Part shown: piece after piece, positions 6,064-64,000 of the stretch
Layout of the letters: the number at the start of each line of letters is the position of its first letter
Numbering within the stretch: the stretch's first letter is position 1
Sequence record: OR532817.1
Direction: 5' to 3' (one strand)
Length of the DNA stretch: 64,000 bases
The notes under the pieces: generated by a model
Seen by the model: the letters and a program-made list of their open reading frames with translations, nothing else
Database searches by the model: none
What the model was told of the DNA's origin: nothing
Position numbers and translations under genes: made by a program

Positions 6064-9990
<3,927 letters not shown>

Positions 9991-10069: not shown

Positions 10070-10573
<504 letters not shown>

Positions 10574-10880
10574 TATTTTATAATAAAAAGGGATATTTTA
10601 TATGAATGAAAAAATTGTAAAACTAAACACTTTACTACAAGAAATTGTAGATCTAAGTTCTCACATGGATGATACACATATTCATATGGTTGAGGAATTA
10701 TGTTCATCTGTACTTGCAGTATTTGCTGATCATGATTATGTACCTATGGTACACGTAGAGGCACCTGAAGAAGACGGTGAAACTGAAATTTCTCCTGGTG
10801 TATTTGCTGTTCGCAAGGACAATAAAATTACGATTGTTAACAAATAATATTATGGAGACTACTAATAGTCTCCTTTATTT

Positions 10881-11779
<899 letters not shown>

Positions 11780-11998
11780 ATATGCATGTAAAAATTAACC
11801 CAGAAAAGAACTTTTATAATGAAGTATTCGGTTCTGAAGATTTAGTACGTCATTTTCCTGAATTAGAAACAACTGGCGTCGAAGTTTATTATGATGGTGA
11901 CTTGTATCATATCATTAAAGATGGTAAACTAGCTGGAGATTGCTGTTTCTTTGATGAAGAAGAAATGGAACATCTTACCATTCTATAAATAAAAAAAT

Positions 11999-12485
11999 GG
12001 AGGCGACTGTATTCAGTACTGAATCAATTGATCGTTGCGTAATCAGATTCAGTTAGCGTAGTATTAGCTGGGACGCGTACTTGTGAGCCGCAACCACAAT
12101 GTACTTAAAATCCAACGCGTGGAGGGTAAGCATTCTGTACTGAATAGCAGAAGGGCTACAAAAACTTATACTTCAAAAAGGTTCGGGAAGTATTCGTAAT
12201 AAACCGTTTAATCGTCTTATCAGTACTATGAACAACCAATATATTTGTGGTGGATATTATTGGACTCAAGTAGATGATATTATCTTTGTACGCTTTCTAA
12301 CCAAAAGGTCAGATAATAAAAATGTAAGAAAATTTCAGTACTGATAGCTGGAACCTTACTATAGCAAAAAGACCTGATATGACTCGCTTAGGTCTTTAAA
12401 TTATATAATGCGAGGGACGCTACGCCTTAGTTTAGGGCTAAATCGTAAGGATTGCGTACTAAACCGCCTTGAGAGTCCCAAGGCA
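11999..12485 (+). ncRNA. candidate ~490-nt structured ncRNA
   Basis: No ORF; about 10 helices (e.g. AAAGACCT/AGGTCTTT, CCAATA/TATTGG, ATACTTC/GAAGTAT, AGGCG/CGCCT). Confidence 0.55.
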
Positions 12486-12600
12486 ACTTTTAATTAAAAT
12501 AAATTTGGACAAAACACAAAAAGGTGATATAATGATTCTATCTGAAGAAGATTGGGGTGTTTATCCTAAAGACGAATTTGATGGATTTTAATAAAAAATC

Positions 12601-12630
12601 TTGAACAAAAACAAAATAATGTGATATAAT
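12601..12630 (+). promoter_or_regulatory. extended -10 promoter for ncRNA
   Basis: TTGAAC ... TG-A-TATAAT. Confidence 0.65.
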
Positions 12631-12634
12631 ATTA

Positions 12635-12772
12635 GTACTGAATGAGGATAGGTGCAGTTGGTGAGATACCGCATGAGAAATCATAGACACCATAGACACC
12701 GTAGAAAGCGAAGGGCTTGGTGAGCGACGGCAATAGACAAGCATAGTAGAGGCTTGAAGAACTCATTAGTAC
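12635..12772 (+). ncRNA. structured ncRNA, paralog A
   Basis: Closing stem GTACT(G)AATGAG/CTCATTAGTAC starts at the expected TSS and is followed by a T-run; core shared with 13373..13472. Confidence 0.65.
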
Positions 12773-12878
12773 TTTTTTTAATTTAAAGAATTATGCACTA
12801 GTTGTTTTAAATCAGTAAAACACCGAAGATGTAAGTACTATGTAGTATGTCAAAATCAAATACAATAAGAGTATACAT

Positions 12879-13352
12879 ATGAAAGTCGAATTGGGAAGTA
12901 CTATCAAAGCAGGTTATACTGTTTCAGTTACAACGTGGGAAAATGATGCAGATAATTATCAAACAAATGACATTGTAGGCTTATCTAAAGAAGATGCCAA
13001 AATGTTTATTGATACTTTACCCATTTTTAAATCCGTTTATAGTAAAAAGAAAGGTCTTGGAAACAAAGAACTTAATATTAACCAGTACTTGGGTAAGTTC
13101 GAAGACCTAATCAATAACAATATTATCACAGTGTCATTTGCTGAAAAATATTTTGGTTATATTAACCCAAATAGTGATTATGATGAAGATGAACAACAAG
13201 ACACGATTATTGAAGCATTGTCTGAAATTCTAGGATATCCAGTTGAATACGATTATGGTTTTATCAGAGTCGTTGAAAAAGTTCAAGTACTCTACTTCGA
13301 TGAAGATACTGTAATTCCTTCAGGTTCGAAAGTAGACACCAGTACTTTATAA
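12879..13352 (+). CDS. hypothetical phage protein
   Basis: 157-aa ORF, TWENDADNY motif. Confidence 0.65.
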   Translation: MKVELGSTIKAGYTVSVTTWENDADNYQTNDIVGLSKEDAKMFIDTLPIFKSVYSKKKGLGNKELNINQYLGKFEDLINNNIITVSFAEKYFGYINPNSDYDEDEQQDTIIEALSEILGYPVEYDYGFIRVVEKVQVLYFDEDTVIPSGSKVDTSTL

Positions 13353-13372
13353 CATATAAAATACAGAACAAA

Positions 13373-13472
13373 TACTGAATGAGGATAGGTCATTGTGACC
13401 GGATGAAGTGAAAGGCTTGGTGAGCGACGGCAAAACCCAACCGTAGTAGAAGCTCTAGGAACTCATTCAGTA
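13373..13472 (+). ncRNA. structured ncRNA, paralog B
   Basis: Perfect 11-bp closing stem TACTGAATGAG/CTCATTCAGTA; core GGCTTGGTGAGCGACGGCAA shared with paralog A. Confidence 0.65.
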
Positions 13473-14753: not shown

Positions 14754-15263
14754 ATGAATATCACTAATGTAAAAGATTTTTTAGAATATTTTATTAAGAA
14801 TACTCGTGCCCGTGATGAATTAGAAAAAAATGGATTCGTTGATGGTTACGATTGCACTAATTTCTTTTATACTATTGATAAACATGAATATTATGTCGAT
14901 GCAACTTTAAGTGATGATCCATATTATATAAAAGATGGGTATTGCATTGGATTTACGTTCGAAGATAAATCACTAGATGCACCAATAAACTTTTATACAT
15001 TATATTATAATAAAAAAGATAATATTTTGAAATTAGGATTTACTTGGGATGATGAAGAAGATGTTGTATTCAATTGTAATACATGGTTAGAACATGATTC
15101 ATTCTTTCAAAGTACATTAATTCATGACTTTATGACAACAGATTTAGAGTACTGGAAAAACTGCATAGAATTACTTAATGTAATTTATAATGAACAAGTT
15201 AAAAAATTTGACAATAGTTTACACAATGATGACATTTATAATAAAAACTTTATGGGACGATAA
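14754..15263 (+). CDS. hypothetical protein, FQxS-motif family
   Basis: HDSFFQSTLIHD..TTDLEYWKNCI. Confidence 0.7.
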   Translation: MNITNVKDFLEYFIKNTRARDELEKNGFVDGYDCTNFFYTIDKHEYYVDATLSDDPYYIKDGYCIGFTFEDKSLDAPINFYTLYYNKKDNILKLGFTWDDEEDVVFNCNTWLEHDSFFQSTLIHDFMTTDLEYWKNCIELLNVIYNEQVKKFDNSLHNDDIYNKNFMGR

Positions 15264-15371
15264 TCGTAGGACGGGTCAGCATTTGGTAGTATGTTCGGCT
15301 GAATAAAGTATAAACGTCATCACCAAATTTAAAAAAAGTGTTGAACAAAATCATCAATACTGATATAATAA

Positions 15372-15608
15372 ATGAAATTTTTTTTAAGGTCATATGATAT
15401 GTTGACAGATACTAATAAAAAGATGTTTATTCAAATAGGTTTTTTTACTCTTCAAGATATCATTGATAAGGCACATGAAAAATGGCCTAATGTAAAACTT
15501 GAAGATATTCATATTGAAATAGAATGTATAGAAGAAAATAATACTTCATATCATGGTCTGAAAAACGTAAAAGTTTGCACTGAATATTACGTATTAAGTA
15601 TTGAATAA
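15372..15608 (+). CDS. hypothetical protein
   Basis: ORF directly after promoter at 15341..15369. Confidence 0.55.
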   Translation: MKFFLRSYDMLTDTNKKMFIQIGFFTLQDIIDKAHEKWPNVKLEDIHIEIECIEENNTSYHGLKNVKVCTEYYVLSIE

Positions 15609-16157: not shown

Positions 16158-16217
16158 AAATTTTAATTTAAATAGTACTTGACAAAAATGTTCAGTACTG
16201 ATACAATAAAGAATATT

Positions 16218-16528
16218 GGCCCCTTAGCTCACGCTTTGGTTAGAGCAGACGACTCATCGATAAATGGTGACTTTCACAAGTAATTGTGATTGAAAAACTG
16301 GATGAATTCAGGGAAACCTTAACACATAATGGTGATGGCAATCCTGAGCCAAGCCCAATAAGCGTATTGGGAAGGTGCAGAGACTAGGTGGTTCAGCACG
16401 ATCTTGCTGTGTAATACACCAATAGCGTCCGGCATCCTTATAGGATGATGATATAGTCCTTTCTATAATGAAAATTATAGGTAAAAAGAATCGTTTGGTA
16501 CTGTGTTCGACTCACAGAGGGGCCACCA
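16218..16528 (+). tRNA. tRNA-Ile2(CAU), intron-containing (exons 16218..16257 and 16489..16528)
   Basis: Joined exons give GGCCCCTTAGCTC...GACGA-CTCATAA-TCGTT...AGGGGCCACCA, closely resembling E. coli ileX. Confidence 0.9.
16258..16488 (+). mobile_element. group I intron (IC3-like), 231 nt, no ORF
   Basis: Core AATTCAGGGAAAC, AATCCTGAGCCAA, GTGCAGAGACT, GATATAGTCC; 5' exon ends in U, intron ends in G; GUGA can pair with exon UCAU giving the U.G splice-site wobble. Confidence 0.92.
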
Positions 16529-16532
16529 CACA

Positions 16533-16606
16533 TTGTACTCTTCTCCCGTAAGGAGAATGACAAAAAGCTATCCGAAAGATAGAAAGCCTGAATTAACAGG
16601 GTGCAA
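16533..16606 (+). ncRNA. candidate 74-nt four-way-junction RNA
   Basis: TTGTAC/GTGCAA closing; TTCTCC/GGAGAA, CTATC/GATAG and CCTG-AATTAA-CAGG hairpins. Confidence 0.55.
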
Positions 16607-16618
16607 TTAAAATACATT

Positions 16619-16693
16619 GGTTCGTTGGCCTATTGGTCGGCCAGCAAACTGTTAATTTGCCTCAAACTAGTTCAATTCTAGTACGAACCGCCA
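16619..16693 (+). tRNA. tRNA-Asn(GUU)
   Basis: GGTTCGT/ACGAACC, GCAAA-CTGTTAA-TTTGC, encoded CCA. Confidence 0.9.
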
Positions 16694-16737
16694 TTTTTAA
16701 TCCGAATGAACTGTAGTTCGATAAATAACATTAATAT

Positions 16738-17307
16738 ATGTTATTAAAGGACTACATTTTCATGGGAAGAAAACAATCAGAAGAAACAAAAAATAGAATT
16801 TCACAAGCTTTAAAAAATAAATCAATATCTCTTCCAGTCGAAGAAGTTATTGAAAAATATAAAAGTGGAATATCTATTGTAAAATTATCACAGTACTATA
16901 AATGCAGTAAGTCAAAAATAAGTTCTATACTAAACGATAATAATATAAAATCAAATAGAATTTTAAATAAGAACAAGTTATGTGATAAACATAACATTGA
17001 ACATATACAACAACCAAATGGCAAATGGGTATGTTCACAATGTAATACTGAAAGAGTTTCTGAAAGACGTAGACAATTAAAAATCTTGGCAGTAGAATAT
17101 AAAGGTGGATGTTGTGAAAAATGTGGATATAATAAATGCATAGCTGCGTTAGAATTTCATCACTTAGATCCTTCACAAAAAGATTTTTCTATTAGTAAAG
17201 AAGGAGTCACTCGTTCTTTTGATAAAATTAAAACAGAACTTGATAAATGTATTATGGTTTGTGCTAATTGTCATCGTGAAATTCATGATGATGAAAGAAA
17301 AGAATAA
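16738..17307 (+). CDS. HNH homing endonuclease with N-terminal NUMOD3-like/HTH segment
   Basis: RKQSEETKNRIS; CEKCG...LEFHHLDP...CANCHREIH. Confidence 0.85.
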   Translation: MLLKDYIFMGRKQSEETKNRISQALKNKSISLPVEEVIEKYKSGISIVKLSQYYKCSKSKISSILNDNNIKSNRILNKNKLCDKHNIEHIQQPNGKWVCSQCNTERVSERRRQLKILAVEYKGGCCEKCGYNKCIAALEFHHLDPSQKDFSISKEGVTRSFDKIKTELDKCIMVCANCHREIHDDERKE

Positions 17308-27957: not shown

Positions 27958-28580
27958 ACATGGATGTTGGACATTCTTTTTGAAAAGAACGTATGGATAA
28001 AAACCCGATTAGCCGAAAATGTAACGCTACGGATGAGTATAACCAACATATACGAGATGCAGAGGATACCCGAAAGGCGAGACGGCATCTAAAAGGATAG
28101 GAAATAGCACTGCCTATCCCAAGCTTACATTAGGCTTGATAGATCGCAAATCTGGTTGAGTCCAGACAAATAAAGAGTGTAAGGGAGATTATTTTCTTTT
28201 AGATATTTTGGAAATAATCACAGTATTGAATTGCTTGAATAGTTCGGTACTGAAGTGCAAGTATGTTTAAACTTGTGACCGTTGCATGTGACTGCGATAG
28301 GACGAAACAGGGCAACCCGCGTTCGTGTACCAAAAGGTATAATTCGCAATTCAAGGAATTTCGACAGCTACGAGCTTCAAGGCTTAGCTTTTTTATTTCT
28401 CTTCCCCTCCCTGTGGGGGGATGAAAATATCTCGTGCAAACGCCTTCAAGTATTGAAATTCACGAAGTGAATTGAAATTACTTGTTCTGTAGTCGAACGA
28501 CAGTGAGACGTGAGAACAAGTAATTTCTGCATGTATCAACGAAGTGCAAACGGAGTTGATACATAGCACTTTAAAACATT
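27958..28580 (+). ncRNA. candidate ~620-nt ornate structured RNA
   Basis: No credible ORF; helices AGATGC/GCATCT, GGATAGG/CCTATCC, TCTGG/CCAGA, long-range TTGAATTGC/GCAATTCAA, AATTACTTGTTCT/AGAACAAGTAATT, TGTATCAAC/GTTGATACA. Confidence 0.65.
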
Positions 28581-61456: not shown

Positions 61457-61959
61457 TTAAAAAGACTCCCCGTAAAACTCGATCAAACGGATTCTACGGG
61501 GAGTATACTATATTGGACGATATGGTCATTATAGTAGACAATTTAATGGATATAGGTGATTCAGTACTGATAATAATGAATATAAATGAATAAGAATAGT
61601 ATAGTACTAATAATAATGAATAGGAATTGATAAGAATGATTCAGTACTATTAAGAATGATTAAGTACTATTCAGTACTATTCAGTACTGATATGCCACTA
61701 AGTCCGTTTATAAAGTCGCACCCAGTGGGCTACATTTGTAACTATTCAGTACTTAATAATTCAACTCATCAATTATTACAAACCTAACTATTTCAAATCT
61801 AATTACCCCATTAACTAAATCCCCAAATTATATATTAGCAAAAATCCCAGTACTAAATCAAGAAAAATCTGGATTGTCGATGAGAAAAAATCTGGATTTT
61901 AAAAATTTTGAAATGTCGTTCATAGTTCAGGAAAAAAATGAAATCATAACAAGAAAAGT

Positions 61960-61990
61960 GTTGACACGGACATACTGCCATTATATAATG
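61960..61990 (+). promoter_or_regulatory. sigma70-like promoter upstream of ~500 bp of non-coding DNA
   Basis: GTGTTGACA...TATAAT; no ORF downstream. Confidence 0.6.
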
Positions 61991-63228
61991 TAATCCTCAA
62001 GACGAGAGAATGTTCTCTCATAGAAATGCGAAGAAGCCGAGTTTATCTGTCCCTGCGTGAGTGGGCTAACATTTGAATAGGACAATACGTAGATGAATGA
62101 AAAAGGTTTAAAGGGAAGTATTTGATTCCCTGTAGTATAGTTAATGAGTTAGTACTGATTTAGATGTAATCATTGAGTAGTACTACTGTCGCAAAGGGAA
62201 ACCTTTGGCTTCCATGGGGAGTGATGACAGAAGGGCATTATCCTCCATATAGAGTTACTGCTAATAACTCCGTAAGTTGGGTTGTGGCAAACCTCCTAAA
62301 ATAAGTAATAACAGTACTACTGCTTGATGGATTTGTTACCCGTAGGTAGTACTGATTTTAATTTAAAGAATACCCTCCGCCAAGAAAGGTGCATGTAACT
62401 TGAACATGTGAACTACGGGAACAGTACTGAACCATTCAGTACTGATTCCTCTCCAAATTTTGGATACAATAATGCTAGGCTTCAGTTAGTACTGAGTGAG
62501 AATGATAATGATTCTCATTTGAATTGGATGAGAACGATTCTCATTTACTATTGCAAATGATAATAGATTGCATTTACGAATGGTTCTCATTCGCAGATGA
62601 TAATGATTCTTATTCAAAATTGATTTTTCCGATTTTTTCCATTAGTCCCCCTTCAGCGTAGGGTTAATTTTTCCCCTGCCGAATCGGTTTTATATTTTCA
62701 AAATCTGGATTAATCATATCAGTACTAACCCAGATAAACAATACCCCTTTACAAATCTTTACAAAAAGATTCTAAATGCGAATACAAATGATAATGATTC
62801 TCATTTACAGTACTGAATACTTTTCCCCACGCTCTGGCGTCTCCGGTTCCTCCCGTCTATATAAACATTATACAGTACTGAAATATTAAGTCAATACTAT
62901 TTTTTCAAAAAGATTAAAATAAAATACTTGCAATCCTGATATTATTATATTATAATGTTTACAGTACTGAGAAAGTGCTTTTGCCCGCTAGGGTGCGGGG
63001 GAGTATGCGTTAAATGAGAATGATAATCATTTACAGTACTGGACGGATTTTCCCACCCTCGGGGGTCTCTTTTTGTCTATGTGGTAATTATACAGTACTG
63101 GAATACTATATCAAGTCTCTTTACAAATCTTTACAATCCACCCGGGGAGATTTATCTTTACAATAAAAGTACTTGCATAATTCTTTCAGTACTGCTATTA
63201 TATATTCATACCAAACAGGAGAACTACC

Positions 63229-63399
63229 ATGAAATACGCGTACTCTTATTTTATTGTAAACGGTGAACGTTTGACCATCGGCCAGGCAGCGGTAAAGCAT
63301 GAAATCATTTGCGATGATCTGGCAAAGATGCTACCAGGTGAAACGCAAGAGTTTTACAAGGGCTTTCAGAAAGTCACTGTAACACGTTGTGAAGATTGA
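63229..63399 (+). CDS. 56-aa early hypothetical protein (not in ORF track)
   Basis: Own promoter, AGGAG RBS, MKYAYSYF...RCED. Confidence 0.6.
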   Translation: MKYAYSYFIVNGERLTIGQAAVKHEIICDDLAKMLPGETQEFYKGFQKVTVTRCED

Positions 63400-63464
63400 T
63401 CCAGTATTAGGGGTAGGAATACCCCTAAAACGTCCTGTAACGCATTATAAGAGGTTTTTATAAT

Positions 63465-63692
63465 ATGGCTATAGAAGTTAACGCTGGGGATATAAAGGCG
63501 GCTGTACTGCGTACCCTGAAAGCATACGGCAGAAAGCTGAATGATCGCAACGTTCCCTATTATTTCCTTGCTGCTACTCATAAAATGGCAATCGCTGAGG
63601 CTCGCGGGTGGCTGAATGATCGCAGTACTGTAAAGAGTACCAGAACAAGAAACGCAATTGAGCGATGGATAAAAGAATTAAATCATTTCTAA
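63465..63692 (+). CDS. 75-aa hypothetical protein
   Basis: GAGG RBS, higher-GC coding sequence. Confidence 0.6.
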   Translation: MAIEVNAGDIKAAVLRTLKAYGRKLNDRNVPYYFLAATHKMAIAEARGWLNDRSTVKSTRTRNAIERWIKELNHF

Positions 63693-64000
63693 TAGTTCAG
63701 TTATGGAATCAGTACTGATTCCCTGTTTAGTACTGAAATTATAAGGGGAGTTAATTAATTCCCCTTTACAAATCTTTACAAAAGAATGGTTGACATAGTA
63801 TCCCAGTACTGGTATTATGTATTCATAGACAGAACAAGTCTTTGGCCCACCGGGTGCGGAGGAGTATCTATTAGATTGAATGATAATGATAATGATTCTC
63901 ATTTACTGTACTGAATATATTTCCGCACCCTTTTGGGCTTTTCGATTACTTTCTACTTGTTAATAAGTATACCATAATCAGTACTGAATGCAATGGTCTT

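Follow-up and report, generated by a model that had tools for sequence, protein, structure and literature searches.

The species 1 and 2 RNAs of phage T4 are small stable RNAs encoded beside the phage tRNA genes. In the jumbo phage PA5oct, RNA-seq has defined four orphan transcribed regions without ORFs, ncRNA001-004, which measure 236-619 nt and two of which are highly expressed (PMC7318152). ROOL, GOLLD, OLE and raiA are ORF-free RNAs that are widespread and rich in covariation, and ROOL and GOLLD are phage-associated (PMC5737381; PMC12286853). Here we describe a gene-free interval, hereafter the gap, in Klebsiella jumbo phage RCIP0023 (OR532817.1), a member of the RaK2/K64-1 group (Alcyoneusvirus). 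The analysed DNA, a 64,000-nt stretch of this genome, is referred to as the window, and a window position equals the position in the RCIP0023 record minus 62000.

By analogy, the nearest precedent for the gap would be the ORF-free transcribed regions of the distantly related PA5oct. The phages that carry them fall in one broad clade, the RaK2-like jumbo phages, and in each case the DNA is free of genes over a few hundred bases and without similarity beyond close kin; the PA5oct regions were defined by RNA-seq, whereas transcription of the gap is a prediction from its sequence (PMC7318152). The gap shares its size class and the lack of an ORF with ROOL, GOLLD, OLE and raiA, but unlike these widespread, covariation-rich RNAs it is a single-genus orphan with no supported long-range fold. 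Two further comparisons come from the same phage. A large RNA at 27958-28580 is similar in length, also occupies an ORF-free gap and also has raised G+C, but it has a sigma-70-type promoter of its own and occurs in each genome as several diverged copies, whereas the gap is single-copy. The small RNAs at 12635-12772 and ~13375-13472 resemble the small stable RNAs found beside the tRNAs of T4, and the gap resembles all of these in its place at the head of a tRNA cluster, its RNA-gene-like G+C, the size of its modules (130-140 nt) and a closing stem that contains AGUACU. Unlike the two neighbouring small RNAs, which have their own early promoters, the gap modules lack such promoters, and the only sequence that they share with these RNAs is AGTACT.

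The flagged stretch and its flanks match RCIP0023 with 100% identity, and the interval from 11989 to 12485 is confirmed as a real gap without a credible gene. No ORF of at least 40 aa with an ATG, GTG or TTG start is present on either strand between 11999 and 12468, and the deposited RCIP0023 record carries no annotation from 11989 to 12878, which bears out the description of the region as ORF-free in the original prediction. The longest stop-free frame within the gap has 66 codons and the largest ATG ORF has 38 (12228-12344). Neighbouring genes lie on the + strand throughout. Upstream are tightly packed small early genes, the last of which encodes a 68-aa protein (11782-11988), and downstream is an island in which tRNAs, small RNAs and promoter cassettes lie together with a group I intron. 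The gap adjoins the early-gene block on one side and the tRNA and small-RNA island on the other, at the head of the tRNA cluster.

The gap sequence is narrowly distributed. In a blastn search of 50,697 phage records, a collection that we assume to include PA5oct, it is confined to nine near-identical Alcyoneusvirus records, all jumbo phages of 346-358 kb; the few other matches in this collection lie in the flanks, none in the flagged region. The stretch with its flanks is 94-98% identical to K64-1, KP13-7, Muenster, phiKp_21, RaK2 and another assembly. IMG/VR contains the gap sequence only in RaK2, and it was not found in E. coli genomes or in an exact pattern scan of 185,579 prokaryote genomes. 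Compared by BLAST with 7t3, XbC2 and Kaldavass over their entire records, the gap gave only short matches of the AGTACT type, plus a 43-nt match within a Mimasvirus CDS that is put down to chance. When the 5' part of the gap was searched for with a covariance model (R2, built on the 5' module described below), neither a further copy in the phage nor a counterpart in 7t3, XbC2 or Kaldavass emerged; the gap is present as a single copy.

Known RNA families do not account for the gap. At gathering thresholds, Rfam 15, which should include ROOL, GOLLD, OLE, raiA, tmRNA, RNase P, group I and II introns, 6S and Y RNA-like families, recognises only five tRNAs and the group I intron (16232-16480) in the window, and a permissive scan of 11700-13000 (E<=10) adds only four chance matches to snoRNA models (E 1-7.6). 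The cmsearch against Rfam that had been suggested as a check was therefore run with no known family matched, even at E<=10. The original prediction had also seen neither an RNase P motif nor tRNA-like ends of a tmRNA; the Rfam scan is empty for RNase P at E<=10, and a search for tmRNA in the gap is empty in both ARAGORN (tmRNA mode at default, 90% and 80% thresholds) and Rfam. Paralogy with the large RNA at 27958-28580 was considered and rejected. This family of jumbo enterobacterial phages comprises eight copies in three phages, with a core of ~77 positions and 33 invariant columns; a core model (R1) scores 92.4 bits at 28253-28329, as opposed to 5.6 bits (E 9.6, filters off) at 11957-12020, and the invariant core words of the family are absent from the gap. 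The gap was likewise rejected as a copy of the small RNAs at 12635-12772 and ~13375-13472, for which the best alignments at the sequence level consist of a 9-nt AGTACT match with flanks.

Plausible predicted transcription signals bound the gap on both sides, a late-promoter-like word at the 5' end and a terminator-like hairpin at the 3' end. From the promoter-like word TATAAATA we infer a late start at ~11997-11999, a position that coincides with the start given in the original prediction. TATAAATA is strongly avoided in the window, with 4 copies observed and 18.6 +/- 4.1 expected; all four are on the + strand, just 5' of a gene or RNA, and the whole RCIP0023 genome contains only 24. The core of the word, ATAAATA, is likewise strongly avoided; it occurs six times on the + strand of the window (11776, 11984, 13930, 16721, 35705 and 40678), each time just 5' of a gene or RNA, with a single copy on the - strand. 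In the related phages CBB and GAP32, ATAAATA is reported to stand before late genes (PMC5259590). Another TATAAATA precedes tRNA-Gly (13948) by 11 nt, and this tRNA may therefore be transcribed in the late phase. Among the seven aligned genomes, six have ATAAATA at a distance of 16-25 nt from the conserved block of the gap, on its 5' side, and OU509535 is without the promoter word at the gap 5' end. For annotators, ATAAATA offers a rare and well-placed mark of probable late promoters in these genomes.

At the 3' end, the seven genomes show no variation in the terminator-like hairpin; the terminator scan as a whole found three elements, with 2.6 expected in shuffles, and so shows no enrichment. 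A strong extended -10 promoter of the early type follows 3' of the hairpin, at 12506-12533. A 19-codon ORF (12532-12591) sits between two promoters of the early type. Its Shine-Dalgarno match is 6 nt long (AGGTGA), and its codon use is very gene-like (score 0.59). The ORF falls under K64-1 gp261, is without annotation in the other records examined, and could be either a genuine micro-gene or a leader peptide.

The composition of the gap divides it into modules. With a G+C content of 39.0%, at the 97.6th percentile of 487-nt windows, it is richer than the window (31%), as had been claimed in comparison with its flanks, but the excess is unevenly spread: 43.4% at 12008-12150, 30.1% at 12216-12348 and 43.1% at 12349-12485. 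Both ends are RNA-gene-like in G+C, and the middle third is closer to coding or background DNA. The equally G+C-rich windows include known RNA genes, namely the group I intron and tRNA area, the large RNA at 27958-28580 and, at 32.2-33.0 kb, another RNA area; windows at 59.6-60.3 kb and 62.0-63.9 kb are equally rich. The last ~2.5 kb of the window (61457-64000) has no ORF longer than 75 codons, a G+C content raised to 39-42% and the densest cluster of AGTACTGA in the window, at roughly 35 strand-matches. The features of the gap are listed in Table 1.

Table 1. Features of the gene-free gap, and the corresponding locus in Mimasvirus-type phages (window positions unless a record is named)
Feature	Position	Strand	Basis or remark
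T4-type late-promoter-like word, TATAAATA	11984-11991	+	overlaps the stop codon of the 68-aa gene
Variable leader, GGAGGCGAC (5' pairing arm of the original prediction)	11997-12007	+	replaced in phiKp_21 and OU509535
61-nt block, identical in 7 of 7 aligned genomes	12008-12068	+	alignment
5' G+C-rich module, best candidate for a folded RNA element	12008-12150	+	43.4% G+C
Hairpin H-a: 9 bp, one bulged base, 9-nt loop	12077-12104	+	predicted; pair change in two relatives
Hairpin H-b: 4 bp, 5-nt loop	12111-12123	+	predicted; in the MFE fold of every allele and in RNAalifold
Linker hairpin: 7-bp stem, 12-nt loop	12168-12193	+	predicted by RNAalifold
A+T-rich middle, ~30% G+C, with 66-codon stop-free frame	12144-12344	+	coding-like codon use
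3' G+C-rich module, predicted hairpins 12368-12397 and 12430-12464	12349-12465	+	RNAalifold
Terminator-like hairpin with short T-run	hairpin 12466-12484, element to 12490	+	6-bp stem with 4 G-C pairs, 7-nt loop
68-aa homologue, then conserved 100-aa gene and tRNA	L009 3174-3560; L010 3174-3559; L037/L038 2715-3101		Mimasvirus-type phages and two metagenome contigs

The neighbourhood of the gap is mosaic and 96-100% identical among relatives. Plain identity is uninformative for this reason, and the gap was compared only with silent sites, with divergence measured from RCIP0023 after masking of mosaic patches. Against RaK2, divergence is 0.59%, 0.42% and 3.57% at the first, second and third codon positions, 0% in tRNAs and 0.83% in the gap (4/481). 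The gap thus diverges four-fold more slowly than third codon positions (Fisher p = 7e-4). Silent divergence as low is seen in only 2% of coding windows of 481 nt, and three of the four differences fall outside the small ORF. This slow divergence makes it probable that the gap is functional, and it speaks against an inert spacer. Against phiKp_21, the codon positions differ by 0.38%, 0.38% and 2.99%, tRNAs by 0.53% and the gap by 1.29% (4/311 unmasked); against OU509535, the corresponding values are 0.71%, 0.31%, 2.45%, 0% and 1.29% (4/311 unmasked). The unmasked gap does not differ significantly from third positions in its rate in either case (p = 0.09 for phiKp_21, 0.30 for OU509535), and with the mosaic patch included it is not slower than silent sites at all. 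Within this patch, both genomes differ by 33-40% at 11960-12007 and by 19-21% at 12069-12126, with zero differences at 12008-12068. An identical 61-nt block inside a diverged patch would reflect either strong constraint or two separate conversion tracts.

Mosaicism extends beyond the gap. Further patches of 59-90% identity are found at 8400-8900, 10400-10800, 14800-15400 and 16200-17300. RaK2 and OU509535 are without the segment at ~12795-13390, which holds a 157-aa gene (12879-13352) and the second small-RNA copy and which is present in phiKp_21 and RCIP0023.

The diverged patch at 12069-12126 provides the changes that bear on folding of the 5' module. In phiKp_21 and OU509535, the G12077-C12104 pair of hairpin H-a becomes A-U while its single bulge shifts from 12100 to 12098, and the U12111-A12123 pair of hairpin H-b becomes C-G. 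Among close relatives, the bulged base of H-a is T or C, and the change in Muenster falls within the loop. Of the 11-12 substitutions in the patch, six preserve the two hairpins and the other five or six lie outside any supportable helix. Both compensatory events come from one lineage, and random substitution of the same number of sites in the patch yields at least two compensated pairs in some shared stem in 13.7% of cases (p ~0.14). RNAalifold on seven genomes gives a covariation term of -0.36 kcal/mol, in which one pair is compensated, five carry a conservative change on one side and five are broken. The two compensatory pairs and the moved bulge are therefore suggestive of a folded 5' module, and are neither significant nor proof of one. 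Elsewhere, the predicted linker hairpin carries two point changes and a 1-nt insertion in or beside its loop. The 3' module is nearly invariant and for this reason yields no covariation information; two changes there, C/A at 12455 and an additional A that OU509535 carries after 12438 (placed by the alignment, in which the reference shows a gap), map to predicted internal loops. A pseudoknot between the loop of H-a and 12034-12039 was rejected as sterically implausible, as the two 3' strands would be left with no linker between them.

Folding energy does not set the gap apart from its background. On the + strand, the 487-nt MFE is -122.7 kcal/mol, as compared with -112 +/- 6.1 for dinucleotide shuffles (z -1.75), and 6 of 100 shuffles fold as well; on the - strand, z is -2.88. 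A 150-nt window scan gives z values of +0.07 to -1.68 in the gap and -2.5 to -4.5 in tRNAs, but the group I intron of the same window scores only about -0.65 to -2, so that the energy test is low-powered and is compatible with structure. The MFE fold of the + strand does draw the approximately ten helices of the original prediction, but at ordinary energy. Three of the helices are built from the genome-wide palindrome AGTACT, the commonest hexamer of the window with 210 copies, often as TTCAGTACTGAA. Each kb of coding DNA holds 3.0 copies on average and each kb of non-coding DNA 4.3, all codon phases are represented, and AGTACTGA is found 115 times with 1.9 expected. A 15-bp stem (12010-12024/12132-12146) and a 10-bp stem (12218-12227/12337-12346) consist of AGTACT copies with their usual flanks; any two such copies are complementary, and these stems consequently pair by construction. 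Annotators of these genomes should discount helices that contain AGTACT, which creates spurious long-range stems in RNA folds. The probable pairing of the 5' and 3' ends through AGGCG and CGCCT, which had been proposed earlier, was also rejected. It fails because the 5' arm varies, GGAGGCGAC being replaced by AGAGATGGA in phiKp_21 and OU509535, while its partner CGCCT is invariant and forms half of the terminator-like hairpin.

Taken with these observations, the reading that we tentatively favour, at somewhat less than even confidence, is that a genus-specific non-coding RNA is transcribed late from the gap, modular in build and folded in its two G+C-rich ends. The putative transcription unit of ~490 nt would be reached by read-through from the upstream early operon, probably together with a late start from the promoter-like word, and its transcript would end at the terminator-like hairpin. 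It would be modular rather than one ornate fold, with a G+C-rich 5' module carrying the two predicted hairpins H-a and H-b, a middle rich in A+T, and a G+C-rich 3' module leading into the terminator-like hairpin. The G+C-rich ends could be released as small stable RNAs, like the neighbouring small RNAs and tRNAs, although such processing is conjecture.

The most serious alternative, which we consider rather unlikely, is an inert or structural spacer, namely a long 3' untranslated tail of the upstream early operon that holds the remains of a lost gene and ends at the terminator, with helices that arise by chance and from AGTACT. The background-level folding energy, the non-significant covariation and the mosaic nature of the island are all consistent with this reading. 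The 66-codon frame at 12144-12344 is also gene-like in codon use, scoring 0.17-0.31 per codon with a gene mean of 0.26, but it has no usable start before codon 29. In phiKp_21 a 1-nt insertion breaks it upstream of the ATG. Gene content turns over at this locus: next to the 68-aa homologue, Mimasvirus phages (XbC2 and Kaldavass) and two metagenome contigs carry a gene for a 100-aa protein and then a tRNA. In record L038, ARAGORN reads a 4-base anticodon (ttag) in the tRNA after the 100-aa gene. Remnants of this alternative gene content are not evident in the gap, in which tblastn finds no trace of the Mimasvirus 100-aa protein. A decayed tRNA, including one within the 3' module, was rejected as well; ARAGORN matches appear only at 70%, where four in 0.95 kb equal the background (137 per 40 kb of coding DNA). 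A spacer would also be at odds with the four-fold reduced divergence from RaK2, which extends outside the small ORF, with the invariance of the 61-nt block, and with the G+C of the two ends, which is that of RNA genes and not of background.

A second alternative, unlikely in our judgement, is that the gap is the messenger for a 38-residue micro-protein, with the G+C-rich ends as structured untranslated regions. The candidate is the 38-codon ORF at 12228-12344, bracketed by two AGTACT palindromes and annotated as gp260 in the K64-1 RefSeq record only, leaving it unannotated in eight of nine records. It is intact in all nine, with a single substitution, a conservative Ile/Val change, and no indel inside. 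Its gene-like codon-use score of 0.149 exceeds that of 97% of antisense ORFs of 30-60 aa and falls in the lower 18% of real gene windows; some 20 small frames were inspected, so this 3% tail is weak evidence. Other features argue against translation. No Shine-Dalgarno-like word precedes the ORF, a lack seen in only 7 of 69 annotated genes, and RNAalifold places the start codon inside a predicted long hairpin. Neither the 38-codon ORF nor the 66-codon frame has a relative beyond the genus in phage genomes (tblastn), PHROGs, Pfam or a word-indexed set of 5.8 billion proteins, and a protein atlas look-up of the 38-aa ORF gave no usable match and a low recognition score. A micro-protein would moreover leave the constraint on the other 370 nt unexplained.

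A different coding call, the 38-aa CDS CPT_Muenster_456 of phage Muenster (12083-12199), was rejected and is very likely false, given its codon-use score of -0.03, changes at 8 of 43 residues of its frame in OU509535 and a frameshift in phiKp_21. The indels that separate relatives across the gap measure 1, 1, 2 and 1 nt, none of them a multiple of three. The gap is non-coding by every test except one weak one, and of the public CDS calls inside it, Muenster 456 is wrong and K64-1 gp260 doubtful.

Two further alternatives are improbable. The gap might act at the DNA level, either by binding a protein, be it as an operator or as the target of a putative reader of AGTACT, or as part of a replication origin. 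The invariant 61-nt block, which closely follows the late-promoter-like word, does hold two adjacent perfect palindromes within 12011-12032, an AGTACT palindrome (12011-12024) and ATCAATTGAT (12023-12032), and AGTACT is a genome-wide DNA signal independent of reading frame; against this, ATCAATTGAT is not enriched (9 near-matches in the window, 12.4 expected), the density of AGTACT in the gap is near the non-coding average, G-C skew makes no turn along the gap, and such an element would account for 60 nt, not 490. Least probable of all is one large ornate multi-helix RNA of the ROOL and GOLLD size class, as put forward in the original prediction: a length of ~490 nt, the phage setting, the missing ORF and a different large structured RNA in the same phage (27958-28580) fit the idea, but the likeness to ornate phage RNAs comes down to length, there is no Rfam match at E<=10, no energy excess, no significant covariation and no closing helix between the ends, one third of the gap has background composition and coding-like codon use, and it is a single copy in one genus where known ornate classes are widespread.

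On present evidence, the gap is a plausible but unproven orphan element and not a new class of ornate RNA. In a fuller form of the favoured reading, to which we give slightly less credence, it would encode a new Alcyoneusvirus-specific ncRNA of ~490 nt, transcribed from a late T4-type promoter, perhaps cut into two small stable RNAs (12008-12150 and 12349-12485), and part of an island of RNA genes adjacent to tRNAs. If the gap does give rise to a late stable RNA, the 61-nt invariant block together with the two predicted hairpins would offer a short, testable target. Many RNA genes are coming to light next to the tRNAs of giant phages in this clade, and such an RNA would be an orphan, genus-specific addition to them.
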